From the sequence record OR805294.1: a DNA stretch of 64,000 nt. One strand, given 5' to 3'. A program made the position numbers and the translations under genes. Shown one piece after another: positions 4,340 to 51,601 of the stretch; positions within the stretch are counted from its first letter, which is position 1, and every line of letters starts with the position of its first letter. The notes under the pieces were generated by a model. The model did no database searches, was not told the origin of the DNA, and saw only the letters and a program-made list of their open reading frames with translations.

Positions 4340-4522
4340 ATGCAAACCAAAGCAACCGAGTTGGCAGTAGGCGATGTTGTTTTCTACAATGGCATGAAAA
4401 TGACTATCCAGAAAATTTCTAAAGGTCGGTGTGCAATAGATATTACACTAGTAAATACTTTGGCTAAACTCACATCTTATGTGACAGTCGACTACGACGA
4501 AGAATTTGAAGAAGTATTATAA
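4340..4522 (+). CDS. Small hypothetical protein (60 aa), possibly SH3/KOW-like beta protein
   Basis: CAGGAG RBS gives ATG4340; ELAVGDVV motif. Confidence 0.75.
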   Translation: MQTKATELAVGDVVFYNGMKMTIQKISKGRCAIDITLVNTLAKLTSYVTVDYDEEFEEVL

Positions 4523-4539
4523 TGCAGAAATTATAGTCA

Positions 4540-4568
4540 TAAGAAAAGGGGCAATGCCCCTTTTCTTA
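4540..4568. terminator. Bidirectional terminator
   Basis: TAAGAAAAGGGGC-AAT-GCCCCTTTTCTTA between convergent genes. Confidence 0.85.
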
Positions 4569-4805
4569 TAGTCCCAACAAATGCTTGCCACTTTTGACTT
4601 GCATCATACGTACTTTCTTTTTGCGCATTTGCGTTCTTACGTTCAGGCTGTTGGGACCTTTGAAGCTATACAGTATTTCAGTAGTCCCGTCTTCATAGTT
4701 GCGTACCACATTTGCAACAATTTGACTGCCTTCCTGGAACGCTTCGATAAACACGCAGTAATTGAAATTTTCCTTGTTAGCGTTATGTGCGCGTAGTTGC
4801 ATCAT
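4566..4805 (-). CDS. Small hypothetical protein (79 aa)
   Basis: Minus-strand CAGGAG RBS, promoter at 4844-4871, ends in the bidirectional terminator. Confidence 0.75.
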   Translation of the reverse strand: MMQLRAHNANKENFNYCVFIEAFQEGSQIVANVVRNYEDGTTEILYSFKGPNSLNVRTQMRKKKVRMMQVKSGKHLLGL

Positions 4806-4843
4806 TTTCTGTTACTCCTGCGTTGTTTTGCTTTGTTATGTGT

Positions 4844-4871
4844 AGTATACGCTATGTGTGTACTAATGCAA
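4844..4871 (-). promoter_or_regulatory. sigma70-type promoter
   Basis: TTGCAT-16-TATACT on the minus strand. Confidence 0.65.
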
Positions 4872-4949
4872 GAATTTTCTTCCATTTTCTTTCAAATAAA
4901 ATGTTATTAGCATCTATTCTGTTATAACATTTTCTATGACTTCGTGTTT

Positions 4950-4976
4950 TGCAAATAAGAATTAATCGCATTTGCA
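4950..4976. promoter_or_regulatory. Fur-box-like palindrome
   Basis: TGCAAATAAGAAT-T-AATCGCATTTGCA. Confidence 0.65.
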
Positions 4977-5158
4977 TTCCTACCTATCTGCCTAAAATTT
5001 AGGCAGCCTGGGTGATTGTCTCCCCCGCCCTATTACTGGTCTCTGTATAAAGATAATAGCATATTTGCATCTGCATGCAAGCATTTTTTGTAGAATTTTC
5101 CTCTTGACATTCCTTGCTGTAGGCTACATTATGCACACACAAAGCAGGAGATACCATT

Positions 5159-5539
5159 ATGGCACTCATAGCATTAGTCGCAACTGCATATGACAAAGAA
5201 GGCGATAAGTTCGACTATGTTCGATATCTTAAAGCTCATATCAATTTTGTGTCTGCTCAAGATCAACTGAAAGAATGGATCAAAAACAAAATTGATGCAA
5301 GTATAGCAGAAGTTAAAATCGGATTACGTGCAGAAATCGAAGTATTGGCCTATTTGGGAAACTATATAAGCCATAGTCACCGGATTATTAGTCCCGCCGG
5401 AATCATTATGTACATTGTTCTTGATGAGAAGTATGTTAACGAACTTCACGGTCAAATTTCTAATGCAATTGATTGTGAAGAAAAGAAACATGTAATAAAG
5501 AAAGAAGAAAACGTCACTTATATTGATTTTAAAAAATAA
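5159..5539 (+). CDS. Hypothetical protein (126 aa)
   Basis: TTGACA-17-CATTAT promoter from 5104; CAGGAG RBS. Confidence 0.8.
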   Translation: MALIALVATAYDKEGDKFDYVRYLKAHINFVSAQDQLKEWIKNKIDASIAEVKIGLRAEIEVLAYLGNYISHSHRIISPAGIIMYIVLDEKYVNELHGQISNAIDCEEKKHVIKKEENVTYIDFKK

Positions 5540-5733: not shown

Positions 5734-5813
5734 GACCAATATTATTCATTTGACAAAAAATAATAATTAAAAATATAATAGCTTATTATATAACTTCTCA
5801 TATTAGGTTAATT

Positions 5814-6185
5814 ATGAAACTTATTATTGCTTCAATTGCATTGTCTTTGTCCACACTAGTTTCTGCAGAATCTATTTCTGAAGTTAAGATAACTAAAGAA
5901 ACATGCCTTACACTTCTGGAATTATCTAAGATTCATGTTGATATGGTAGTAAATGAACATATGAATGCAATACAAATTGCATCTCATATGGATATTGTAT
6001 CTAATTTATATAAGAATAATAATAGTAAATGGCTTGCATTCTTGCAGGCTCAAGCAAATATTTCAAAATTAATTGATGACGTATATGAGTTTTCATCTAC
6101 TGAAGAAAGAAAGATTATTCCTCTAGCCATATTTAACGGTTGTATGGAAAGAGTTGGTAATACTTTTGAAATATATAAGAAATAA
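5814..6185 (+). CDS. Putative exported protein with signal peptide (123 aa)
   Basis: MKLIIASIALSLSTLVSA-E signal pattern; TTGACA-18-TATAAT at 5750-5779. Confidence 0.75.
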   Translation: MKLIIASIALSLSTLVSAESISEVKITKETCLTLLELSKIHVDMVVNEHMNAIQIASHMDIVSNLYKNNNSKWLAFLQAQANISKLIDDVYEFSSTEERKIIPLAIFNGCMERVGNTFEIYKK

Positions 6186-6186
6186 T

Positions 6187-6495
6187 ATGTATAATGTATA
6201 TGTAGTCCACGGAATAATCAACACAGGTGTTGAGACTAATATATGTGATATAGAACGTTACGTTGCAAGTAACGACTTCTATGCTGTAGCAAAGTTTCTT
6301 AATTTTAAAGAACATATGGTACCAAACACACGATTAATTGTTTCTGGATTAAATACTAAAAAGAACATATTAGAATTGGAATTAAATTTATCGAAAAAAG
6401 AATATGTAGTATCAGGTTTTAGAGTTACATCACCTGATATAAACAAATGTATTGAATATTACCTGTGTAGAAGGATATTTAAGTTACATGATTGA
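6187..6495 (+). CDS. Hypothetical protein (102 aa)
   Basis: ATG just after the upstream stop. Confidence 0.65.
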   Translation: MYNVYVVHGIINTGVETNICDIERYVASNDFYAVAKFLNFKEHMVPNTRLIVSGLNTKKNILELELNLSKKEYVVSGFRVTSPDINKCIEYYLCRRIFKLHD

Positions 6496-6634
6496 ATTTA
6501 TATTAAAATCCCTTTTATTAACTTCAATTGTCAGTGTTGGCATACTACTGATATTCATTATTATTTCATTGTTAATGTTTGGCTTAGCACCGATAGTTCC
6601 ATTCCTTATTTAATTTTAATTATTTGCAAGCAAA

Positions 6635-6661
6635 TGCAAATGCGAATAATTCTTATTATCC
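6635..6661. promoter_or_regulatory. Fur-box-like palindrome
   Basis: TGCAAATGCGAAT-A-ATTCTTATTATCC. Confidence 0.6.
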
Positions 6662-6827
6662 AGCAGGCCACTGTACCTAATCTTCGTTAGATAAAATCTA
6701 TTAGAATCTACAAAGTCCATTAAAACGTTCAATTGTACATGGTGGCCAGATCTGCATATACTACACACATGAAGCAAGCAAACAGCGCTTCATAAACAAA
6801 CCCAAATACAGCTAGGAGTTCCAAATC

Positions 6828-7265
6828 ATGACCAAAGCAACCGTTACCGTCGAGCAATCCGCAATCAAACTGGTCCGCCGCAACCTGGAAGGGCACCGGC
6901 AGGCCCTGCTGCTGAACGGCGTCGAAGTAGGCAGCAGCGAAGCGTTCTACAAGACCAAAACCCAGCGCACCTGGTCGGCGAAGATCGACGCCAACATCAA
7001 CGGCAAGGACATCGTCCTCGAACAGAAAGGCGTGTTCAGCGCGATCCGGATCGCCCGGGCGATGGAACAAGCAATCCTGTTCATCCTGACCGACGGCAAA
7101 GAAGGCGCCGAGATGCCGGCCAGCACGCTGAGCAAGGAAGAGCAAGCCCACAACCTGGTCAAGGCAGTAGTCCAGGTCGCCGACCACGCAGTCCAGTCCG
7201 GCGACGCTGCCCCGGCGAAGAAAGGCAGCTCGAAGAAGCGCAAAGAAGCCCAGCCGGAAGCATAA
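6828..7265 (+). CDS. Early hypothetical protein (145 aa), paralogue of 1..422, basic C-tail
   Basis: TAGGAG RBS, GC-rich host-like codons, shared motifs, GAAA-loop terminator downstream. Confidence 0.9.
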   Translation: MTKATVTVEQSAIKLVRRNLEGHRQALLLNGVEVGSSEAFYKTKTQRTWSAKIDANINGKDIVLEQKGVFSAIRIARAMEQAILFILTDGKEGAEMPASTLSKEEQAHNLVKAVVQVADHAVQSGDAAPAKKGSSKKRKEAQPEA

Positions 7266-7278
7266 TCCGGACTACACC

Positions 7279-7304
7279 GAGAAAGCACCGAAAGGTGCTT
7301 TCTC
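7279..7304 (+). terminator. Intrinsic terminator
   Basis: GAGAAAGCACC-GAAA-GGTGCTTTCTC. Confidence 0.85.
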
Positions 7305-7310
7305 TATGAC

Positions 7311-7370
7311 TGTTAATAACAAATATTCTTATTTGCATCTATTCTGACATAATAATAACTCTTATTTACA
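7311..7370. promoter_or_regulatory. Two Fur-box-like palindromes (7311-7337, 7344-7370)
   Basis: TGTTAATAACAAA-T-ATTCTTATTTGCA and CTGACATAATAAT-A-ACTCTTATTTACA. Confidence 0.55.
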
Positions 7371-7421
7371 AATCATACTGAATAGTGTATTTTACACACT
7401 AAACATTGTAGGTAATATAAA

Positions 7422-7910
7422 TTGAATATATTTGTGACTGACACAAATCCTTATGTATGTGCCAAACATCATTGTGATGTTCATCTAAGAAAGATGATAG
7501 TAGAAACAGCACAATTGTTAAGCACCACTCATTATATAATAAACGGATATACTCCTGCATATAAACCTACTCATAAAAATCATCCATGTGCCGTTTGGAT
7601 TAGAGAAAGTTCAAAAAACTATGAATGGACTTATGAACTTCTTACAAATCTTATAAATGAATTTGAATATAGATTTGACAAACAACATGCAACTAAAATT
7701 CACCTTTCGTCATTAAAAACTATACCAAAACTCCCTAATATAGAAAGAACAGAGTTTGTCTTAGTTATGCCAGACGAATTTAAAACAGGTAATGTAACAC
7801 ATTCATATCAGTTATATTTAAATGACAAATTTAAAGAATGGGCATCGAGATCTAACAGACCCATTTATGCTACATATACAAAGACACCTAAACCATATTT
7901 TATTAGTTGA
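7422..7910 (+). CDS. Pyrimidine-dimer DNA glycosylase-family protein (endonuclease V-related)
   Basis: MNIF...HCDxHxxKMIVETAQLLST and YKPTHKNHPCAVW motifs; TTG start. Confidence 0.8.
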   Translation: MNIFVTDTNPYVCAKHHCDVHLRKMIVETAQLLSTTHYIINGYTPAYKPTHKNHPCAVWIRESSKNYEWTYELLTNLINEFEYRFDKQHATKIHLSSLKTIPKLPNIERTEFVLVMPDEFKTGNVTHSYQLYLNDKFKEWASRSNRPIYATYTKTPKPYFIS

Positions 7911-8254: not shown

Positions 8255-8274
8255 ATTATTAAGTCAATTGCAAA

Positions 8275-8301
8275 TGCAAATACAAATTATTCTTATTTGC
8301 A
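8275..8301. promoter_or_regulatory. Fur-box-like palindrome
   Basis: TGCAAATACAAAT-T-ATTCTTATTTGCA. Confidence 0.65.
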
Positions 8302-8483
8302 CAGATCAGACCATCCATTCCAATAACATTACTAACTTGGATGAAATGGCTTACTACAATGAACTTTGAATACTAAAAAGTACCTAAGAAGTAATTCCAG
8401 TTGTATCTAAAACACTATGTGTTATTATACATATAGTGTTTTTATTTCTTATAACTATATTCAATAATAATGGTAAAACATAT

Positions 8484-8807
8484 ATGATTGAAGTAATTAA
8501 ATGCATTATATGTAATGAATCACCCCGTCCTTGTGCATTTGCAGCATTTATTACTCAAATGCGTCAAGTAGTAAAACCTCATGCAACTATAACTAGTTGG
8601 AATATTCTGCCCGGCATTAATGATGATCCAACTAGTTATATTCATGCATTCAGTATAAAATCAAAAACAGCATACGATATTAATCAAGCGGTTACCTTAT
8701 TACTAATGTCATTATATAATGCTAGTGAATATAAGACTAGCTACATACCTACTTCGTTTAAAGACTATGAATCTACAATAAAGCATTTATCTAAGATCAA
8801 ACAATAA
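8484..8807 (+). CDS. Hypothetical protein (107 aa)
   Basis: ORF with ATG8484; promoter-like TTGTAT-16-TATTAT at 8401. Confidence 0.6.
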   Translation: MIEVIKCIICNESPRPCAFAAFITQMRQVVKPHATITSWNILPGINDDPTSYIHAFSIKSKTAYDINQAVTLLLMSLYNASEYKTSYIPTSFKDYESTIKHLSKIKQ

Positions 8808-8871: not shown

Positions 8872-9027
8872 ATGACAAAAGAAATTGCTTTTACTGAAGG
8901 ATTAAAAGCAGGCACTCAAATAAAAGAAGGCAAAGCTATCCTAACTGACTTCTTTCGATATTTCAATTCCTTACCAACTAATATGAGAACTTCTTTTATT
9001 ATCGGTATCAAAACCGGTAGAAACTAA
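8872..9027 (+). CDS. Small hypothetical protein (51 aa)
   Basis: TTGCAT-17-TATGCT at 8812-8840 overlaps the track's start, so ATG8872 is more likely. Confidence 0.55.
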   Translation: MTKEIAFTEGLKAGTQIKEGKAILTDFFRYFNSLPTNMRTSFIIGIKTGRN

Positions 9028-9114
9028 TAAGCATATTAATTTTCATATTTTGGTAGACAAAGGTACTCACTGGATGCATACTGTATACATACAGAACATA
9101 CGGAGTACAAAGGG

Positions 9115-9384
9115 ATGGATGCGCGTAGCCTGCTTCGCCTGATAGAAGACCTTCCTATAGCTGTCTTCGGCAGCACAATGGATATTGTTCATCGAGTCAA
9201 TTTTGAAGCTCTGGACAATGCCGCCCACACCGACGGGGTAAAAGTCCACGAAGACGGAACCAACCGTTATACAGACGCTTTTGTCGATTGTTGGCTCCGC
9301 AGCGTCGAAACAGTTTTGGCCTGTTGCGATTTTGTGACCGAAGACGCAGCGAAGTGGTATATCGAGCACGGTGTCAAGTTTTGA
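9115..9384 (+). CDS. Small acidic hypothetical protein (89 aa)
   Basis: GGAG RBS; GC-rich. Confidence 0.75.
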   Translation: MDARSLLRLIEDLPIAVFGSTMDIVHRVNFEALDNAAHTDGVKVHEDGTNRYTDAFVDCWLRSVETVLACCDFVTEDAAKWYIEHGVKF

Positions 9385-9414
9385 CATCCTCTGCCGCGCC
9401 TGCAGATAAAAAGG

Positions 9415-9457
9415 TTGACGTAGACTAGCAATAGACACATAATAATTACAACGCAAC
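9415..9457 (+). promoter_or_regulatory. sigma70 promoter, twin of 10816..10858
   Basis: TTGACG-17-CATAAT followed by AATTACAACGCAAC. Confidence 0.8.
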
Positions 9458-9482
9458 GCAACTAGCCCTGGAGGGCAAAACT

Positions 9483-9632
9483 ATGTGTAACATTCAATGC
9501 ATGAACAGCAAAGCCGGCGAGTCCTACGCATGGATTTGGAGCGATAGCGATAGCGATATCTGCTACGAAGTTATCTTCCGGCATGGCCAAGTCCTCACCC
9601 AGGTTTGGCTCGGCTATGATATTGTAGCCTAA
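9483..9632 (+). CDS. Small protein (49 aa, MCNIQCMNSKAGESYAWIW...), not in the ORF track
   Basis: GGAGG RBS after the promoter; hairpin AAAGCCCCG/CGGGGCTTT at 9641-9665 downstream. Confidence 0.65.
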   Translation: MCNIQCMNSKAGESYAWIWSDSDSDICYEVIFRHGQVLTQVWLGYDIVA

Positions 9633-9681
9633 CACCAACTAAAGCCCCGTCCCAGGCGGGGCTTTACCGAAGGAAAAGATC

Positions 9682-9891
9682 ATGATCGAACAACTGAAAG
9701 ACATGCTCGTAGCGCAACGCATGCGCATGAACCAACTCGAAAAACTGCGCTACACCGGACGCGTCGCTAGCGAGTTGCATGCCCACGCCAGGGAATTGTG
9801 TGAAGCCTTGGAACTGGCAATTGCAAATGCCCAGTGCCTGGAAATGCGCAAGTTCGAAGAAGCCGCCCTGCACGCCCTGTTCGCACAATAG
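9682..9891 (+). CDS. Small helical hypothetical protein (69 aa)
   Basis: AAGGA RBS; GC-rich codons. Confidence 0.75.
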   Translation: MIEQLKDMLVAQRMRMNQLEKLRYTGRVASELHAHARELCEALELAIANAQCLEMRKFEEAALHALFAQ

Positions 9892-9924
9892 CCCATCGCG
9901 CACAACCCGACAAGGAAACCAAAC

Positions 9925-10416
9925 ATGAGCACCACAATCCCTGATTCGATTAACCCGGGTGATCTTCCTGAAATCGGCCAGCCATTGGCCGATGGAACCT
10001 TCTTTGCCCGCCAATGGCTCAATGGCAAAGAATACGCCTACGTCGATCTCGGCAAAAGCGCCGAGTTCACTGGAGAATGGGGCGAGTATGGGCTGGACGT
10101 GGCCAGCGCCGTTAGCTATCGAGACGGAGCTTCGAACACGGTCGCCATGGCTGAAGCTGGCAGCCCGATTGCCAAGCAAGCTCTTGAGATCGGAGAAGGC
10201 GTATTCATTCCCTCTGTTCTGGAACTGGCTCTTCTGTTCTCCGCCAAGCAAGCCGGCGAGCTGTCTGGTTTCGCAGATCGCTGGTATTGGTCGAGTTCGC
10301 AATACTCCGCCTACGGCGCCTTCAACACGCACCTCGGCGACGGCGACACAGGCCTCGACCCCAAGTACGTCGACTTCCGTGTCCGCCCCGTCCACAAGAT
10401 TCTCATTCTTCAGTAA
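9925..10416 (+). CDS. DUF1566 (Lcl/CLec-like) domain protein of Pseudomonas prophage type
   Basis: C-terminal WYWSSSQYSAYGAF...DG...FRVRPVH motif; AAGGA RBS. Confidence 0.75.
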   Translation: MSTTIPDSINPGDLPEIGQPLADGTFFARQWLNGKEYAYVDLGKSAEFTGEWGEYGLDVASAVSYRDGASNTVAMAEAGSPIAKQALEIGEGVFIPSVLELALLFSAKQAGELSGFADRWYWSSSQYSAYGAFNTHLGDGDTGLDPKYVDFRVRPVHKILILQ

Positions 10417-10493
10417 TCTAGCCCCGGAGATAACACAATGAACCTGCACCTCTCCAAGCATTGTCTGCGCCCGCGCGCGACTAAGGAACAGTC

Positions 10494-10742
10494 ATGAGCA
10501 TTGCAAGCTACTTCTTGTTGTCCACTATTGTCTTCAACAACAACACCTACGCTCGTTCGACGACAGTGGACACCATTGTTGTTCGTGACCTCAGCAAGGA
10601 AGACTGCGAGGCGCTCAAGCGTGAGCGCGAAGCAGTTGTTAAGAACATCCGGGCAAGGAACTTCGGTAGCTCTGGTGATACGAGCGGTATCGCCGTGGGC
10701 TTTTCCAAACATAGCTGCACAAAGATGGAGGGTACGAAATGA
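10494..10742 (+). CDS. Small hypothetical protein (82 aa)
   Basis: TAAGGA RBS. Confidence 0.7.
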   Translation: MSIASYFLLSTIVFNNNTYARSTTVDTIVVRDLSKEDCEALKREREAVVKNIRARNFGSSGDTSGIAVGFSKHSCTKMEGTK

Positions 10743-10815
10743 CTCAACTGGCCACGGCGAGCAAACATTGCCCGGAAGGTGCTAGCTGAACGCCTGGCGG
10801 AACAATAAATAAAAG

Positions 10816-10858
10816 TTGACGTGGCCAAGCGAAGGGCGCATAATAATTACAACGCAAC
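10816..10858 (+). promoter_or_regulatory. sigma70 promoter, twin of 9415..9457
   Basis: TTGACG-17-CATAAT followed by AATTACAACGCAAC. Confidence 0.8.
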
Positions 10859-10882
10859 ACAGCAAGCCCCGGAGGCGCAACC

Positions 10883-11083
10883 ATGACCCAGATCGTAGAT
10901 GTCAAGCAAATTGCAATTGATGCAAACCGTCGCCCTGCCTACAATGCGGTCATGGTGCGCTGGTTGATGCAGGAAGCTGAATTGCACCGTAGCTGCGGTC
11001 GCACCGCTACCCTGTTCTGCATCGTTCGCAACCGCCCTGACGGCACACAGCGCCAGCTTGTGCAGCTTGTGGCTAGCGAGTAA
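10883..11083 (+). CDS. Small hypothetical protein (66 aa)
   Basis: GGAGG RBS after the promoter. Confidence 0.8.
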   Translation: MTQIVDVKQIAIDANRRPAYNAVMVRWLMQEAELHRSCGRTATLFCIVRNRPDGTQRQLVQLVASE

Positions 11084-11113
11084 CTTCTACAACCCTACGC
11101 CCAGGAGGCCGTC

Positions 11114-11278
11114 ATGAATGCTGCACTGGCTAGACTTCAAAACGAACGTTGCATGTTACTTCGCCGGATGCTTTGCAGCAAATGGCACGGATTCTGTTTT
11201 GCAGGTCACCCCTGGGCAGAACAAGCCCGTAGTCTGCACAACGAATCCAAGTGCATCCGCGAACATTACAGTAAGTAA
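11114..11278 (+). CDS. Small Cys/His-containing protein (54 aa, MNAALARLQNERCMLL...), not in the ORF track
   Basis: CAGGAGG RBS; the track's 11118 frame is a shadow. Confidence 0.7.
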   Translation: MNAALARLQNERCMLLRRMLCSKWHGFCFAGHPWAEQARSLHNESKCIREHYSK

Positions 11279-11312
11279 TCCAATCCCACCGGATCTTACT
11301 GAGGATAAGATA

Positions 11313-11417
11313 ATGACATACGCAGAACTAATAAAGAAACTACATAACATAGAAGCTGGTCATTATCTTTCCAATAATGAAGTTAAGTTTCAAAACACAG
11401 GCAAGCAGGAGAACTAA
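11313..11417 (+). CDS. Small protein (34 aa, MTYAELIKKLHNIEAGHY...)
   Basis: GAGGA RBS. Confidence 0.5.
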   Translation: MTYAELIKKLHNIEAGHYLSNNEVKFQNTGKQEN

Positions 11418-11418
11418 A

Positions 11419-11715
11419 ATGAATTGCGAACATTTTTTCCTCAGTGCAGTAAAAGAACTTCTGTCCCTGTACCACATTAAGAGTACTATTCAACCGTCTT
11501 CTGATAACCTCGAAGAATTGGTAGTAGTTATTACCGATACTGCTTTCGGTACTATCAGATATGTCGGAAATAATACTGGATCAGTTATGTGTTATACTAT
11601 GGGCGGTAATTACCCGTTGTATGATACTGAGTGTTATTCCAACCGAACTATGATAGATTGTGTTATGTTGATATCAGTTTGGTATTCAATGTTTCCGGCA
11701 TTTGATAATAAGTAA
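11419..11715 (+). CDS. Hypothetical protein (98 aa)
   Basis: CAGGAG RBS gives ATG11419. Confidence 0.75.
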   Translation: MNCEHFFLSAVKELLSLYHIKSTIQPSSDNLEELVVVITDTAFGTIRYVGNNTGSVMCYTMGGNYPLYDTECYSNRTMIDCVMLISVWYSMFPAFDNK

Positions 11716-21760: not shown

Positions 21761-22366
21761 TTACCCCATTTGCACTCTAACAGTATATTGTATTTGTAAT
21801 GCTCTATTAGATGATTTTTGTATAGGATGGAATATTACATGAGTAATCATTATAGCTTCACTTTGATCTAAATTTCCAGCTATACTGGGCGGACCTACAT
21901 ATAACGCAATTTCATCGAATACAGAACTATCTTTATTATCTTCTGCAAAACTGGGTGCTCTGTCTATAATTTGTTGTTGTAGTCCTGCTTCATCATATGC
22001 AAGAGTAGTGGTTACTTTTAAATCTGAAAAGTTTGTACTTCCTAAAATAACTTCTATTTTATTCTGAAGTGTATTATCTATTTCTTTTTTAAATGTTTCG
22101 TTATATAACGAATCGTCGGGATTGCGTATAATAGAAACATTGGGTTCCCTATAAATTATTTCGCCCTCAGCAGTCACTCGAGTACCGCCGTTGCCGAAAG
22201 CCATATATCTTACGTGCCCGTTATCTTGTCCAGCCAATGCAGATACTATAGCAGCAGCCAAATTACCGAAATGAATTGCATTCTTTTTGCTAAGAAGTAT
22301 TTCACCCGTGTCTTTATCTACAATAGTAAGATGCCCAATAGCACGGATAGTTCCACTATCTTGCAT
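21761..22366 (-). CDS. Virion structural protein (201 aa)
   Basis: In-operon; MAFGNGG, FDEIALY, ITHVIFHPIQKS motifs. Confidence 0.8.
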   Translation of the reverse strand: MQDSGTIRAIGHLTIVDKDTGEILLSKKNAIHFGNLAAAIVSALAGQDNGHVRYMAFGNGGTRVTAEGEIIYREPNVSIIRNPDDSLYNETFKKEIDNTLQNKIEVILGSTNFSDLKVTTTLAYDEAGLQQQIIDRAPSFAEDNKDSSVFDEIALYVGPPSIAGNLDQSEAIMITHVIFHPIQKSSNRALQIQYTVRVQMG

Positions 22367-22367
22367 A

Positions 22368-22493
22368 TTAACCCCTTTTATTTAATAATTCTTTATTTGT
22401 TTTCAGATCTACAATTTTAACGTGATCGAGGGCGTGACCGAGCACGTCCTCGTCTGGTTTTTTATTGTTACTGTTATCTTTCTTATCATCCAT
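22368..22493 (-). CDS. 41-aa protein MDDKKDNSNNKKPDEDVLGHALDHVKIVDLKTNKELLNKRG, not in the ORF track
   Basis: Fills the gap, stops 1 nt before the next ATG, resembles that gene's N-terminus; ATG is 5 nt after GATAAATA. Confidence 0.7.
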   Translation of the reverse strand: MDDKKDNSNNKKPDEDVLGHALDHVKIVDLKTNKELLNKRG

Positions 22494-48059: not shown

Positions 48060-48557
48060 TTATTTACTCAGCTGTTTTACTTTCTCTTTATTCTCTTCTG
48101 TCCAGAAATTATTCCAACTACAGAATACCCAACCCTTGTAATCTATACTATTATTTACTTTAATACCGGTTTTTTCTTCAAATACTACCCATTTGCCTTG
48201 CCGAGTTATTTTTATAAAAATAATATTAAAATCACCTTCGCTAGCAGTATCACGTACCTGTGATATCCATGTATCTAATTGTTTGCACTCTCCCTCGAAC
48301 AACGAAGTAAATGAAAATTTTGCATACGATTTACATTCAGAATTAAAATGTTCCCATGTATCTGGAGGGAAAATATCACCTTTATAGGATTTGATTTGAT
48401 TATTGCCTAGTGATGTTTTTCTGACAGAATTTTGTCCTCCTATAAAGGCACCTGAATGTGCTGTTCTAGTAAAGGGTTCGTTGTAAAATGAGGTAAGATC
48501 TTTTGCTACATCTCGTTCCCAGCTACTACCTTTAATTTTACTTTTCGATCCAGACAT
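48060..48557 (-). CDS. Holliday junction resolvase-like PD-(D/E)xK nuclease
   Basis: SKxKGSSWERDVAK; GDI; ECKSY. Confidence 0.8.
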   Translation of the reverse strand: MSGSKSKIKGSSWERDVAKDLTSFYNEPFTRTAHSGAFIGGQNSVRKTSLGNNQIKSYKGDIFPPDTWEHFNSECKSYAKFSFTSLFEGECKQLDTWISQVRDTASEGDFNIIFIKITRQGKWVVFEEKTGIKVNNSIDYKGWVFCSWNNFWTEENKEKVKQLSK

Positions 48558-48631
48558 GTTTTGTTAACCTTTTATATACCTGTTAAATTTTACATTATTT
48601 AGTTAATTTTATACCCATATAATACTGTCGA

Positions 48632-48639
48632 GATAAATA
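48632..48639 (+). promoter_or_regulatory. Possible late promoter (GATAAATA) upstream of the ncRNA candidate
   Basis: Same motif as other late promoters. Confidence 0.45.
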
Positions 48640-48688
48640 TGTGTGTAGATAACTTATAGCATTATTTTTAACGATTTTAGTACAATGG

Positions 48689-48717
48689 TTGACAGTATTA
48701 ATATCGTATGCTATAAT
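48689..48717 (+). promoter_or_regulatory. Consensus sigma70 promoter
   Basis: TTGACA-17-TATAAT with extended -10 TG. Confidence 0.9.
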
Positions 48718-48723
48718 CCGCAA

Positions 48724-49690
48724 CATAATAAAACTAAAGGACGTATGTAACAAAACAGACGTTCTCCTAAGTGTTTTAAAGTTTTTGCTTAGGAAGACCC
48801 AGTTGTATGTTTAAAGGGTGAACGGTAACGGGCATTCTTGTTTAAGACTAGTTCTTATGAAGACATTGGCAACTAACATAGCAGCTTTGTTCCATCATTG
48901 GATATTGGTAGTAGAAACTATCCCCATCGTGCCTTTACTGTAGTACCGTTAGAGACGGAGATGACGCAGGAAAAAAGGTTATTTAAATTATGATTTTGGG
49001 TGCTGCAGAACACTTTCGTAAACAAAAGGAATATAGTTTACGTATACACAACGGGAACGGGAAAAAGCTTTTTAAGCAAAAACGAGTCCCTGGTAATTGG
49101 TGTTTAACGGGAGTGACGTCCCAAATGTTATTCATCGATTAACACTGTAAGAAGGTTGTAAGGGTTATTGTGTTCGAAGTGGTTTACACAACTGTTCTTC
49201 CTACATTTATGTACAGAAGTGTAAACGAAAGGATGTTGCTCTGGTAGAAAAAGATCAACGTACTTTATGACACTATCCTTGTGACATATGTACTTGTACC
49301 AACAACAGCCGCAGGTTACGGATATGGTATTACAAACTGTACTGCGGTTCCGGGAGTTGAAAGTGGATGTTAGCTTAGGTGGCTGTTTGCTTAATTATAA
49401 TGTTTAATTTAGGCAATATAAGCGTCGGGTGAGGCTTTCGTAGGTTGCGTGTTTATGCTACGGTGTAAATGGGCTAGACTACTGGCGCATACATGAGTAT
49501 TGTAGGATTGGCGCTTTAATAAAGAAATTTGTTAAAGTTTGAGTTTAGCTCCCCGCTCATTAGCAATAAACGTTGCTAGTCGATAGTATACCCACGCCTA
49601 AATAATGCCGTCATTGTTTAGTTTTTTTAAAAAATATAATTGTCAATTATATGTCGTACGCATCTACCCCGAAAAGGGGTAGATGTTTAT
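48724..49690 (+). ncRNA. Candidate large (~950-nt) structured non-coding RNA
   Basis: Perfect promoter, no ORF of 60 aa or more, raised GC, many local and long-range helices, 10-bp terminal hairpin at 49661-49685. Confidence 0.6.
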
Positions 49691-49692
49691 GA
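49661..49692 (+). terminator. Terminator-like hairpin
   Basis: CATCTACCCC-GAAAA-GGGGTAGATG followed by TTTATGA. Confidence 0.65.
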
Positions 49693-49747
49693 CTTTCGTT
49701 TACACTCATGTCATAATCAGTACACGCCATTTTAGGCCATTCTACAT

Positions 49748-49918
49748 CAATACACTGCTTCTAGCAGTGTATTGGACATACAAAATGATCTTAAATTATA
49801 TCAAATTTGTTTAATTACTTTAATTTTGTTACTTTAGTAATTTGTATTTTGTTTATATGAGTTGTAGTTTACGAAAACGAATATAAACAAAATACATATG
49901 TGAACTGTAGTTCACATA
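49748..49918. repeat. Cluster of perfect inverted repeats
   Basis: 11 bp (49748-58/49764-74), 16 bp (49843-58/49881-96), 9 bp (49897-905/49910-918). Confidence 0.9.
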
Positions 49919-50070
49919 CTTACTAACGTTGTATATTACGGTAATTCTATAAAATATCTCTATATAATTATAAACGTTTTATGGCATACTACGACTGAAC
50001 GAAATTGAAAATTAACTAGAGATTTAATTAGATAAATAATATTGTAAAAATTGTATAGAGGTATACATCA

Positions 50071-50523
50071 ATGAACGATTACACACATTACACAGAGGAA
50101 GATTTCATATTTTTAGCATATGATTTAAATACTCAGCTTATAAATGATGGATATCCTGACGCTGCTGTAAAATTTATTACTAATCAGTTTATTTTAGAGC
50201 ATAGACATCCTGACGAAATAAAACGTTGTATAGGATGTAATTCTAAAATGTACGAAGATGTTATTGCTACTAAGAGAAATTTATCTGGTAAATCGCATTG
50301 CAGACATTGCGAATCGAAACTTAGTATGTATAAGGAAGTTGTTAAAGAAGTAGCAAATACAACACAAATACTTCGCATACCAGAAAAACATTTAAATTCA
50401 GTTAAACGATTAATTAGAATATATAATGAGCAAAACAAAACTAGTGCATATCAGAGTATATTAGTTAAAACAAAGAAACTTAACACAGGAGTTTCTAAAA
50501 AGTTAAAAAGAAAGGGACGTTAA
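50071..50523 (+). CDS. Zinc-finger-containing hypothetical protein (150 aa)
   Basis: CIGC...CRHC pair, basic C-terminus; GATAAATA at 50031 and GAGG RBS. Confidence 0.75.
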   Translation: MNDYTHYTEEDFIFLAYDLNTQLINDGYPDAAVKFITNQFILEHRHPDEIKRCIGCNSKMYEDVIATKRNLSGKSHCRHCESKLSMYKEVVKEVANTTQILRIPEKHLNSVKRLIRIYNEQNKTSAYQSILVKTKKLNTGVSKKLKRKGR

Positions 50524-50540
50524 TTGTCCCTTTCTTTTTA
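50507..50540. terminator. Bidirectional terminator
   Basis: AAAGAAAGGGAC-GTTAATT-GTCCCTTTCTTT. Confidence 0.8.
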
Positions 50541-50765
50541 TAGGAAGCTTCTACCTGTTTCTGCTTCGATTTTTTGTTTAATAAATTCTCCTAAACGTAC
50601 CCGCTCTTGATATGATAAAGACCAAGCAGTGTGCCAGTCAAATCCATTAATTTTATCACATATTTGGACTATTTCGCCTTCTAATCCCAGTGATTCTTGT
50701 TCATATTCTTGTATAACGTTCCTAATATCATCTGGGGTTCCCGATACTAGGATTCTCTGAAAAAA
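50538..50765 (-). CDS. -1 frameshift extension (73 aa) of the gp26-like chaperone; gp51/GT-like domain
   Basis: Frame has no ATG/GTG/TTG; entered through slippery U UUU UUC (50765-50759) with a 10-bp stem 6 nt downstream. Confidence 0.75.
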   Translation of the reverse strand, partial: FFQRILVSGTPDDIRNVIQEYEQESLGLEGEIVQICDKINGFDWHTAWSLSYQERVRLGEFIKQKIEAETGRSFL

Positions 50766-51601
50766 CTTACTGGGTTAAAATCTACAGGTACTACAAAACT
50801 TTTATTACAGTTGTCGCATACTGCATCAAAGTCGCCATTAACTCCTACTTGATTTATTTCTTTTAAAAGACTATCTATTTTATTAACATCTGCTCTATCT
50901 ATATTTGCTATAAATTCTTTTATATCAGCCAGTGTCTGAGGAGTATTATTAACTATATCTATACCGTTAGTTTCATCTACAATACGAACTATTGTTTTTG
51001 CAATTAATTCGAAATTTAATGATGACAGTTCATTTATTGTGTTAGAAAAGGCAGAAAGTTTTTCTTCATCTGAATACATATCGCTTTGCATTATTCTAAT
51101 AAATTTTGCTTGTTCTAATGCAGTTTTTGCAACTGTCATATTATCTGAAAAATCATATGGTCTAATAAATATAGATAGACCGTTATCGAGGTTCACGACG
51201 TATTGATCTTCTAAATAAGTGGACGTATTAATAACATTTAATAAGTCTATTCCATATAAATTTTTATGATTACAATGCGGGCACGTAGAAGAAATATCTA
51301 TTGTGTTACCGTATGATGCTGCTTTTATAGCAACACATATCATATGAATGTCATTAATCAAGAGTTTATTTACATCTTTAATTCCCGGTACACAACTCTT
51401 AATTACTTCTTTTAAGCCTTCACCGTTCACTAATGCATCAGGATTTTTTATTAATACTTCATCTTTTCCTGTCATAGCATATACCCCTAGTTCTCCAGAA
51501 TCGGTGTATTCTACAACATTTGATGGATAAAATGAATTTCCGCTGGGCAAACGAATATAAGATTTGAATGTTCTGTAATATTGATGTAATTTGTTGCTCA
51601 T
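50747..51601 (-). CDS. Baseplate hub/tail assembly chaperone, T4 gp26-like (284 aa)
   Basis: YIRLPSG..FY; MTGKDE; CPHC and CDNC motifs; ends FNPVSFF. Confidence 0.8.
   Translation of the reverse strand: MSNKLHQYYRTFKSYIRLPSGNSFYPSNVVEYTDSGELGVYAMTGKDEVLIKNPDALVNGEGLKEVIKSCVPGIKDVNKLLINDIHMICVAIKAASYGNTIDISSTCPHCNHKNLYGIDLLNVINTSTYLEDQYVVNLDNGLSIFIRPYDFSDNMTVAKTALEQAKFIRIMQSDMYSDEEKLSAFSNTINELSSLNFELIAKTIVRIVDETNGIDIVNNTPQTLADIKEFIANIDRADVNKIDSLLKEINQVGVNGDFDAVCDNCNKSFVVPVDFNPVSFFRES

Follow-up and report, generated by a model that had tools for sequence, protein, structure and literature searches.

The window analyzed in this work is the whole 64,000-nucleotide stretch of sequence record OR805294.1. 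Between a resolvase gene and a Zn-finger open reading frame (ORF), it contains about 1.5 kb (48558 to 50070) without any ORF of 60 amino acids (aa) or more, the longest being 52 and 50 aa. This space probably holds, at about 48724-49692 on the + strand, the gene for a non-coding RNA (ncRNA) of about 970 nt that belongs to the PA5oct-type jumbo phages and would act in trans through its fold. Comparisons with diverged relatives show a conserved, structured, and putatively non-coding unit with its own predicted promoter of the host type, and a common secondary-structure core that is kept by compensatory changes in at least six independent diverged contigs.

The 1.5-kb region was found with 99.1-100% identity in 11 Pseudomonas aeruginosa jumbo phages of the genus Wroclawvirus (PA5oct, MIJ3, Callisto, Ettore, and others); in PA5oct (MK797984) it lies at 75,667-77,179. 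These 11 GenBank matches are useless for covariation because they are at least 99% identical. The comparative evidence comes from six diverged metagenome/Logan contigs, which are L049, L052, L063, L054, L091 and, in part, L074.

Promoter and limits of the predicted transcription unit

The features that delimit the unit are as follows.

48631-48639, + strand: T4-late-promoter-like motif AGATAAATA, an exact match, about 90 nt upstream of the predicted start
48689-48717, + strand: sigma-70 promoter with extended -10 element, exact, consisting of TTGACA (48689-48694), a 17-nt spacer and TGcTATAAT (48709-48717); predicted start near 48724
48724-49692, + strand: predicted RNA body of about 970 nt, its ends placed from the promoter and the terminal hairpin
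49661-49685, + strand: terminal 10-bp GC-rich hairpin CATCTACCCC-GAAAA-GGGGTAGATG, followed by UUUAUGAC; presumed 3' end or protecting stem

An initial annotation, made from the letters of the window, had described a unit of about 950 nt behind a perfect TTGACA-17-TATAAT promoter with TGn, the best in the window, with a late-type motif upstream, a terminal 10-bp hairpin, a GC content of about 40% against AT-rich flanks, and no ORF of 60 aa or more over 1.5 kb. All of these points were borne out. The promoter is one of two 12-of-12 sigma-70 matches in the 64 kb and the sole one with both a 17-nt spacer and the TG extension. GC content is 0.36-0.44 over 48700-49600 versus 0.23-0.33 in the flanks, and the GC skew is positive (G>C) on the + strand. 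In PA5oct, transcription is carried out by host RNA polymerase from TTGAC/TATAATA promoters (PMC7318152). The second perfect TTGACA/TATAAT promoter of the window, at 5750-5779, has a spacer of 18 and no TG; a 123-aa ORF begins shortly after it, at 5814.

The motif AGATAAATA may be a second, late promoter of the RNA gene. It is also present before the Zn-finger ORF (50030) and other ORFs, and its five copies in the window, against 2.8 expected, are weak evidence. In L049 and L052, GATAAATA is located upstream of the -35 box.

Equivalents of both limits can be seen in the homologues. Their promoters read TTGACA-17-TATACT (L049), TTGACA-17-TGcTATAGT (L052), TTGATA-17-TGtTATAAT (L063), and TTGACA-17-TATAAT (L074). 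Counterparts of the terminal hairpin are CUCUGCCCC-GCAA-GGGGCAGAG (L049), GCCUACUCC-GUAA-GGGGUAGGU (L052), UUUCGCCCC-UCG-GGGGCGAAA (L063), and UUCGUCCC-CAAAA-GGGCGAA (L054), with similar hairpins in L091 and in L046, a contig considered below.

Diverged homologues and the common fold

A protein search with the neighboring resolvase led to the Logan contigs L049-L051 (70% protein identity) and L052/L053 (64%), in which the gene order is as in the window and the intergenic DNA has only short colinear islands in common with it. An exact-pattern scan with island 1 yielded L063, an IMG/VR contig of 89 kb. With the core-domain covariance model R1, on which the window scores 106.5 bits, two contigs that had not contributed to it were detected, L054 (48 bits) and L091 (36 bits). 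The genes around the RNA are different ones in L054, and in L091 the RNA lies beside a hub gene of 39% identity. L074/L075 have only island 2 in common with the window. Searches of the region with blastn and nhmmer against the first 48 related loci found no match, neither island 1 nor island 2 had one in metagenome DNA-pattern scans, and viral-contig scans with island-3 and island-2 patterns returned nothing or only loci already known.

Two kinds of island-1 match were set aside. Eight of the nine pattern matches in IMG/VR are chance matches inside one protein-gene family. The one match from a scan of the genome collection, an exact 23-nt island-1 hairpin in Firmicutes bacterium CAG:882 (L084:7360-7484; FR895355.1), scores 25 bits with the D2 core model described below, largely from the 23-mer itself, and was not counted as a member. 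It lies upstream of a 360-aa gene on a gut bacterial scaffold and may be a chance match or a distant relative.

The members have a common layout: a TTGACA/TTGATA-17-TATAAT-like promoter, with TGn in most, an ORF-free body of 580-1000 nt, and a terminal GC hairpin with A/U-rich sequence, but no clean U tract, behind it. Their flanking proteins are only 39-70% identical, yet the promoter, terminal hairpin, islands, and helices have been retained. Which gene follows downstream, and on which strand, varies between the members; the RNA is thus not the leader of the next gene. The structural elements predicted for the window, with their L049 counterparts, are listed here in order.

48730-48738 with 49617-49625, + strand: end-closing helix AAAACUAAA/UUUAGUUUU (DNA AAAACTAAA/TTTAGTTTT), present in the minimum free energy (MFE) fold
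48739-48764, + strand: 5' hairpin 1, GGACGU/ACGUUC; L049 stem ACGCC/GGCGU, two double changes
48765-48794, + strand: 5' hairpin 2, UCCUAAG/CUUAGGA, with conserved UUUUAAAnUUUUU loop; L049 stem GUAGG/CCUAC, two double changes
48871-49018, + strand: core domain D2, comprising P_a, a small variable hairpin, the invariant hairpin, P_b around a variable hairpin, and the conserved strand AUAUGAUUUUGGGUG
48881-48885 with 49002-49006, + strand: helix P_a of D2
48907-48922, + strand: invariant AGAA-loop hairpin of D2, GGUAGU-AGAA-ACUAUC
48923-48926 with 48997-49000, + strand: helix P_b of D2, enclosing the variable hairpin 48931-48979
49017-49042, + strand: hairpin CGUAAAC/GUUUACG, directly after P_a; L049 AAUCGAGU/ACUCGAUU with a similar loop
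49182-49226, + strand: hairpin GUUUACAC/GUGUAAAC with inner stem; L049 GUUUAUAA/UUAUAGAC plus inner UCAU/GUGA
49234-49245 with 49298-49307, + strand: long-range helix P_c, UGUUG-CUC-UGGU / ACCA-A-CAACA
49308-49348, + strand: hairpin GCCGCAG...CUGCGGU with inner UACGG/CUGUA stem; L049 GCAUCUG/CAGAUGU
49634-49652, + strand: penultimate hairpin AUAUAAUUG/CAAUUAUAU; 14-bp hairpin AAGCCGGUUUA.../...UAAACCGGCUU in L049, CUGAA/UUCAG in L063

The + strand folds with an MFE of -279 kcal/mol versus -245 ± 8 for dinucleotide shuffles (z -4.3), while the - strand reaches z -2.6; G-U pairs and fold z-scores favor the + strand. In the closest pair, the window and L049, nucleotide identity is 57% for the RNA, 67% for the resolvase gene, and 62% for the hub gene. 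Anchors and domain-wise alignments were used because plain MAFFT alignments of the whole unit misplace helices. In the anchored alignment of this pair, the consensus fold has -104.6 kcal/mol versus -46.4 ± 7.3 for column shuffles (about 8 standard deviations), and 48 pairs carry double changes versus 24.7 ± 4.9 (about 4.8 standard deviations).

The collection of syntenic relatives and a covariation test had been recommended by the initial annotation; counts of compensatory changes against shuffles show strong covariation. Across six sequences, 93.1% of the D2 cells are paired and 14 of the 23 pairs show double changes, a result as high as which was found in 0 of 500 shuffles; pairing dropped to 34-51% in a control in which the partners were slid by 1-3 columns. 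Helix P_a, GCAGC/GCUGC in the window, is GCUGC/GCAGC, GUAGC/GCUAC, GCGAC/GUCGC, or GUGAC/GUCAC in others. The AGAA-loop hairpin and P_b covary, and the hairpin inside P_b is wholly different in each member. Helix P_c connects the two most conserved islands (49227-49253 and 49298-49315), which lie 19-57 nt apart. It is paired at 9 of 9 positions in six sequences (window, L049, L074, L063, L054, L091), and four positions covary: UCUUG/CAAGA in L074, UCCUG..UGCU with AGCA/GGCA..CAGG in L063 and L054, and UUGUG/CACAA in L091. The partner strand in L052 is ambiguous.

These elements define a proposed family, 'Hub-adjacent large phage RNA, type A', with a D2 core of P_a, the invariant AGAA-loop hairpin, P_b, and the conserved GAUyUUGGGUG strand, and a P_c of the form NNNNG-CUC-UGGN with NCCA-A-CNNNN; a promoter of the sigma-70 type and a terminal GC hairpin, enclosing 580-1000 nt free of ORFs, also belong to the definition. 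The window has the D2 core, P_c, the promoter, and the terminal hairpin.

The helices proposed initially fared differently. TCCTAAG/CTTAGGA (48765/48788) and GTTTACAC/GTGTAAAC (49182/49219) are present and supported by covariation with L049; in the latter hairpin there are two plus three double changes and no broken pair. A further helix, at 49308-49348, has three double compensatory pairs, with CCGCAG/CUGCGG becoming CAUCUG/CAGAUG in L049. The possible end-closing pair (48730/49617) exists in the sequence and in the MFE fold, and UUAACA/UGUUAA can be read by eye at the matching position of the L049 ends. For CGTAAAC/GTTTACG (49017/49036), the hairpin itself stands, while the covariation support is partial: the L049 counterpart and the hairpins at this position in L063 and L054 were recognized by eye, and the tool alignment catches the hairpin only partly. 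Two other suggestions were not upheld. The long-range pairing of AACGGTA/TACCGTT with GGGCAT/GTGCCT crosses the covariation-supported P_a and has no counterpart in the homologues, and the GGGA-GTGACG-TCCC helix sits in an insertion specific to the window. The long-range GCGT-C-GGGT/ACCC-ACGC pairing (49422/49590) falls within the poorly aligning 3' third of the RNA.

Coding potential, gene neighborhood and alternative explanations

The region has been annotated inconsistently. The records of PA5oct, Ettore, and PAC2 give four to six hypothetical proteins (30-52 aa, encoded on both strands), and nothing is annotated in 4 of the 11 records (Callisto, MIJ3, 30-2, 30-3). That the region encodes several very small proteins, as these records have it, is a highly improbable reading. 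Annotators did call four to six small coding sequences (CDSs), some of them perhaps added owing to RNA-seq coverage (PMC7318152), and island 3 gives a similar peptide in the window and L049. However, the CDSs vary by record, and no ORF keeps its position, frame, or length across the homologues; all six island-3 stem substitutions are pairwise compensatory for an RNA helix, and a PHROG search of the region gave no matches. Stop-free sense-strand frames in the members reach 51-94 aa at most and are not in common, and peptide similarity between homologues is confined to the nucleotide islands, where it extends to several frames and both strands.

Two short ORFs had been pointed out in the initial annotation. 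The 50-aa ORF at 48990..49142, raised there as a caveat, begins in the conserved AUGAUyUUGGGUG strand but is not conserved itself, its counterparts being 27 (L049), 7 (L052), 12 (L063), and 14 aa (L054). L049 lacks the AAGGA-cgt-ATG-TAA start-stop ORF of the 5' end. In PA5oct, PAC2, and 30-3, the G in the Shine-Dalgarno sequence of this ORF (48740) is replaced by A, which gives hairpin 1 an A-U pair in place of G-U.

A decayed gene or neutral spacer whose structure arose by chance is the least probable explanation of those considered. The 3' third is poorly conserved and gene remnants do occur in jumbo phage genomes, but every covariation statistic opposes chance, the promoter, terminal hairpin, islands, and helices persist where the flanking proteins have diverged to 39-70% identity, and polymorphism is below that of the flanks. 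In five PA5oct-type genomes, 7 variable sites are present in the 972 nt of the unit versus 11 in 541 nt of flank (Fisher p 0.04); this three-fold lower density indicates purifying selection.

The unit matches no RNA family in Rfam. The covariance-model search of Rfam that had been advised as a check was run with Rfam 15 on the whole window; at gathering thresholds it gave no match, GOLLD, ROOL, OLE, raiA, HEARO, tmRNA, RNase P, group I/II introns, and 6S included. At E<10 on 48400-50200, only four sub-threshold chance matches appeared, the best with 23 bits versus a gathering score of 55, and the homologues L049, L052, L063, L054, and L074 had no Rfam matches either. A tRNA or tmRNA identity was rejected with ARAGORN, which reported no gene in the window. 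No paper describing the window RNA was found. With its diverged homologues, its compensatory changes, no conserved ORF, and no Rfam match, the predicted RNA agrees with the initial proposal of a new large structured ncRNA: judged from its sequence, it is a new family.

The gene neighborhood contains the following features.

48060-48557, - strand: PDDEXK (RusA-like) resolvase gene, Pfam PF24608
49700-50070: AT-rich, palindrome-rich spacer downstream of the RNA unit
49748-49774 and 49896-49918: further hairpins of this spacer
49848-49891, no strand assigned: conserved palindrome, stem TTTGTTTATAT/ATATAAACAAA, loop with GTAGTTTACGAA, downstream of the RNA and part of the locus
50071-50523, + strand: Zn-finger ORF of 150 aa, on the other side of the RNA unit
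50504-50540: bidirectional terminator between the RNA unit and the hub gene
50747-51601, - strand: baseplate-hub gene, beyond the Zn-finger ORF

On its upstream side, the unit adjoins gp47/gp46-type recombination nuclease genes, a structural protein gene, and the resolvase gene. The DNA downstream of it has a GC content of 23-26% and three strong palindromes. The 12-mer GTAGTTTACGAA is single-copy in the window and recurs at the equivalent place in L065/L066, which belong to the C type described below, and in L074/L075; related hairpins with ACGAAnCGAA loops are found in L052, L063, the B-type contigs described below, and PBECO4.

ColE1 RNA II and the T4 origin transcripts (the oriF/oriG R-loop primers and the oriE RNA) are the systems with which an origin function would be compared. 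The transcript would be a replication-origin primer or activator, like ColE1 RNA II or a T4 origin made up of a promoter plus an unwinding element; it would be driven into the AT-rich palindromic DNA at 49700-50070, and an R-loop formed there would be processed into a primer. Both this function and the R-loop step are considered unlikely, though there is a resemblance: these transcripts are also non-coding, have a strong or early promoter, lie among replication and late genes, and are followed by AT-rich DNA. The unit stands among recombination and replication genes (gp47/gp46, the PDDEXK resolvase) ahead of the palindromic AT-rich DNA, read-through is plausible at a terminal hairpin without a U tract, and ColE1 RNA II likewise is a structured RNA. 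An RNase H-like protein is among the PA5oct gene products (PMC7318152). In L054, three 41-nt direct repeats follow just downstream, after the terminal hairpin at the end of the contig (L054:1-146), and may be iterons or an assembly artifact. In contrast, no direct repeats occur downstream in the window or in members other than L054; the window has neither iterons nor a skew switch at the unit (the cumulative GC skew reverses at about 43 kb, where the gene orientation changes); and there is no credible promoter for an antisense regulator or partner. A core that covaries over hundreds of nt, next to unrelated downstream DNA, exceeds what a T4-type origin transcript needs, and the conservation of the RNA fold exceeds that of such transcripts.

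An action in cis or by antisense is improbable as well. Here an early promoter directed towards the late hub operon would repress or time the hub, or the transcript would be a long leader of the Zn-finger gene. The RNA is antiparallel to the hub in every locus examined (window, L049, L063, L091, B-type, C-type, and four Polynucleobacter-1 loci), and a hairpin without a U tract could leak. Interference, however, requires no conserved fold, such as is present here, and in the window a + strand gene and the bidirectional terminator at 50504-50540 separate the RNA from the hub. The L054 RNA lies in a different neighborhood. A common leader is contradicted by L063 and the C-type loci, in which the downstream gene is on the other strand, and the candidate role as leader of the Zn-finger gene was rejected since that synteny is not conserved.

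A trans-acting structured RNA thus remains the preferred explanation, and several points weigh against it. Both RNA ends are predictions only, and the terminal hairpin has no proper U tract. The independent sequences are few, six or seven; the model-fitted alignment is biased towards the model's own structure; and the 3' third (49360-49620) aligns poorly, its helices being putative. The RNA-seq study of PA5oct placed its four ncRNAs elsewhere and annotated the small CDSs gp338-341 here (PMC7318152). A role in trans as scaffold, decoy, or assembly is argued by analogy.

Rearrangements around the locus were also observed. In the window, L049, and L052, the resolvase gene has the opposite orientation to that in the B-type contigs (L003:6001-6378 and relatives), and lysozyme and glycosyltransferase genes lie between the resolvase gene and the RNA in some relatives (L065-L071); the neighborhood has therefore been rearranged while the RNA-hub orientation was kept. 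ORFs resembling GIY-YIG homing endonucleases by eye are located directly upstream of the RNA gene in L046 (6505-6960, - strand) and L063 (1281-1694, + strand), which suggests that the hub-adjacent slot may also be a landing site for mobile endonuclease genes. Elsewhere in the window, GC-rich islands (0.42-0.58, in a phage of about 32% GC) occupy 1-500, 1501-2000, 6501-7500, and 9001-11500. They contain overlapping ORFs on both strands, with no Pfam match above threshold and no Rfam match, and may be further non-coding or acquired elements.

Related RNAs beside the baseplate-hub operon

The ORF-free hub-adjacent stretches of the three contig groups tested contain covariation-supported structured RNAs of different types. 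The B type, of about 530 nt, is found in L003, L006, L007, and L044 (about 6550-7090; 74% nucleotide identity) and has 117 predicted pairs, 18 of them covarying. The C type, of about 640 nt, is found in L065-L072 (about 6159-6808), with 20 covarying among 139 pairs; the covarying pairs of each type were counted in four sequences. Neither type has an Rfam match. A CCUCC sequence in the B-type RNAs was considered as an anti-Shine-Dalgarno sponge and rejected, as it is simply one strand of helix P_b.

Two bridging forms connect these types. L074 combines blocks of the A, B, and C types. L091 has the A-type hairpin, P_c, and terminal hairpin plus the B-type strands CCUCCUUGAG...GAUGAUCUGGAG; read by eye through L091, the sequences suggest that P_b corresponds to CCCA/UGGG in the A type and CUCC/GGAG in the B type.

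Other hub-adjacent loci contain Polynucleobacter-1, an orphan Rfam motif, RF01718 (Weinberg et al. 2010, PMC2864571). Matches of 106-115 bits were obtained at L046:6296-6431, L124:4412-4558, L133:5497-5631, and L161:4104-4239, all on the - strand with the hub on the + strand, which is the slot and orientation of the window RNA. The 141-nt motif is the 5' module of a unit of about 450 nt with a different core, and the RF01718 model (141 positions, gathering score 37 bits) has no match in the window. The L046 unit ends in a UUUCGCCC...GGGCGAAA hairpin, as do L063 and L054, and contains a CAUAGU-AGAAAU-ACUAUG hairpin similar to the invariant hairpin of the window. Polynucleobacter-1 is the nearest named relative of the window RNA, in a positional sense, in sibling loci.

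An ORF-free stretch of at least 400 nt is located within 2.6 kb downstream of the hub in 43 of 75 IMG/VR hub loci, a count for which there is no genome-wide control. In Escherichia coli phage PBECO4 (L081, NC_027364.1), an unannotated 836-nt gap at 4430-5265, between the hub and endonuclease VII genes, contains a TGcTATAAT promoter, an intrinsic terminator, and a GC hairpin (fold z -3.5), and is a probable counterpart of the RNA gene in a cultured coliphage. Only mini-ORFs are annotated at the hub-adjacent place in Salmonella phage PHA46 and Agrobacterium phage Atu_ph07. Taken by their predicted folds and positions, these loci show the window RNA to be one branch of a larger group of putative structured RNAs downstream of, and antiparallel to, the baseplate-hub operon of T4-related jumbo phages.

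During infection, the RNA would be transcribed by unmodified host RNA polymerase from the first minutes, and the upstream motif AGATAAATA may sustain later expression. The transcript would fold into a compact molecule closed by the 5'/3' helix and act in trans as a folded RNA, not via a peptide. Comparison may be made with GOLLD (RF01998) and ROOL (RF03087), which are likewise highly structured and non-coding, with lengths of 580-800 nt and closed multi-domain folds, and are often borne by phages or prophages. The window RNA, on the other hand, has no sequence or structure match with them, no tRNA genes are present in the window, and the carriers are lytic T4-related jumbo phages of Gram-negatives. 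GOLLD and ROOL are reported to form RNA-only multimeric cages (PMC12286853). By analogy, the window RNA could bind host or phage proteins as a scaffold or decoy, or could assemble with itself like GOLLD/ROOL, a suggestion whose likelihood falls well short of even.

Four ncRNAs of 236-619 nt have been reported from PA5oct, ncRNA001-004, at 8263-8498, 21951-22401, 103065-103368, and 246116-246734 (Lood et al. 2020, PMC7318152). They resemble the present RNA as non-coding transcribed regions of the same phage, recognized by RNA-seq, but their coordinates lie elsewhere than 75667-77179, and neither structure nor homologues have been reported for them.

Large structured ncRNAs without an assigned function are seldom found, and every new class has opened up new biology. 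The present RNA belongs to a cultivable and genetically tractable pair, PA5oct-type phages and P. aeruginosa PAO1, and has a probable counterpart in E. coli phage PBECO4. The annotation of 11 deposited genomes, which hold nothing or four to six doubtful mini-ORFs here, is corrected, and the orphan motif Polynucleobacter-1 gains a genomic home in the hub-adjacent slot of jumbo phages. Since the bridging forms L074 and L091 share modules between types, they provide a natural system for the evolution of large RNAs by module exchange. More speculatively, these RNAs may constitute a modular superfamily, near-universal in PA5oct, 121Q/PBECO4-like phages, and hundreds of uncultured freshwater, marine, and wastewater phages, which would subsume Polynucleobacter-1 and have a new biochemical role in infection; as part of the same doubtful but possible extension, that role could be, for example, RNA-only assembly, a ribonucleoprotein machine, or a ribozyme.

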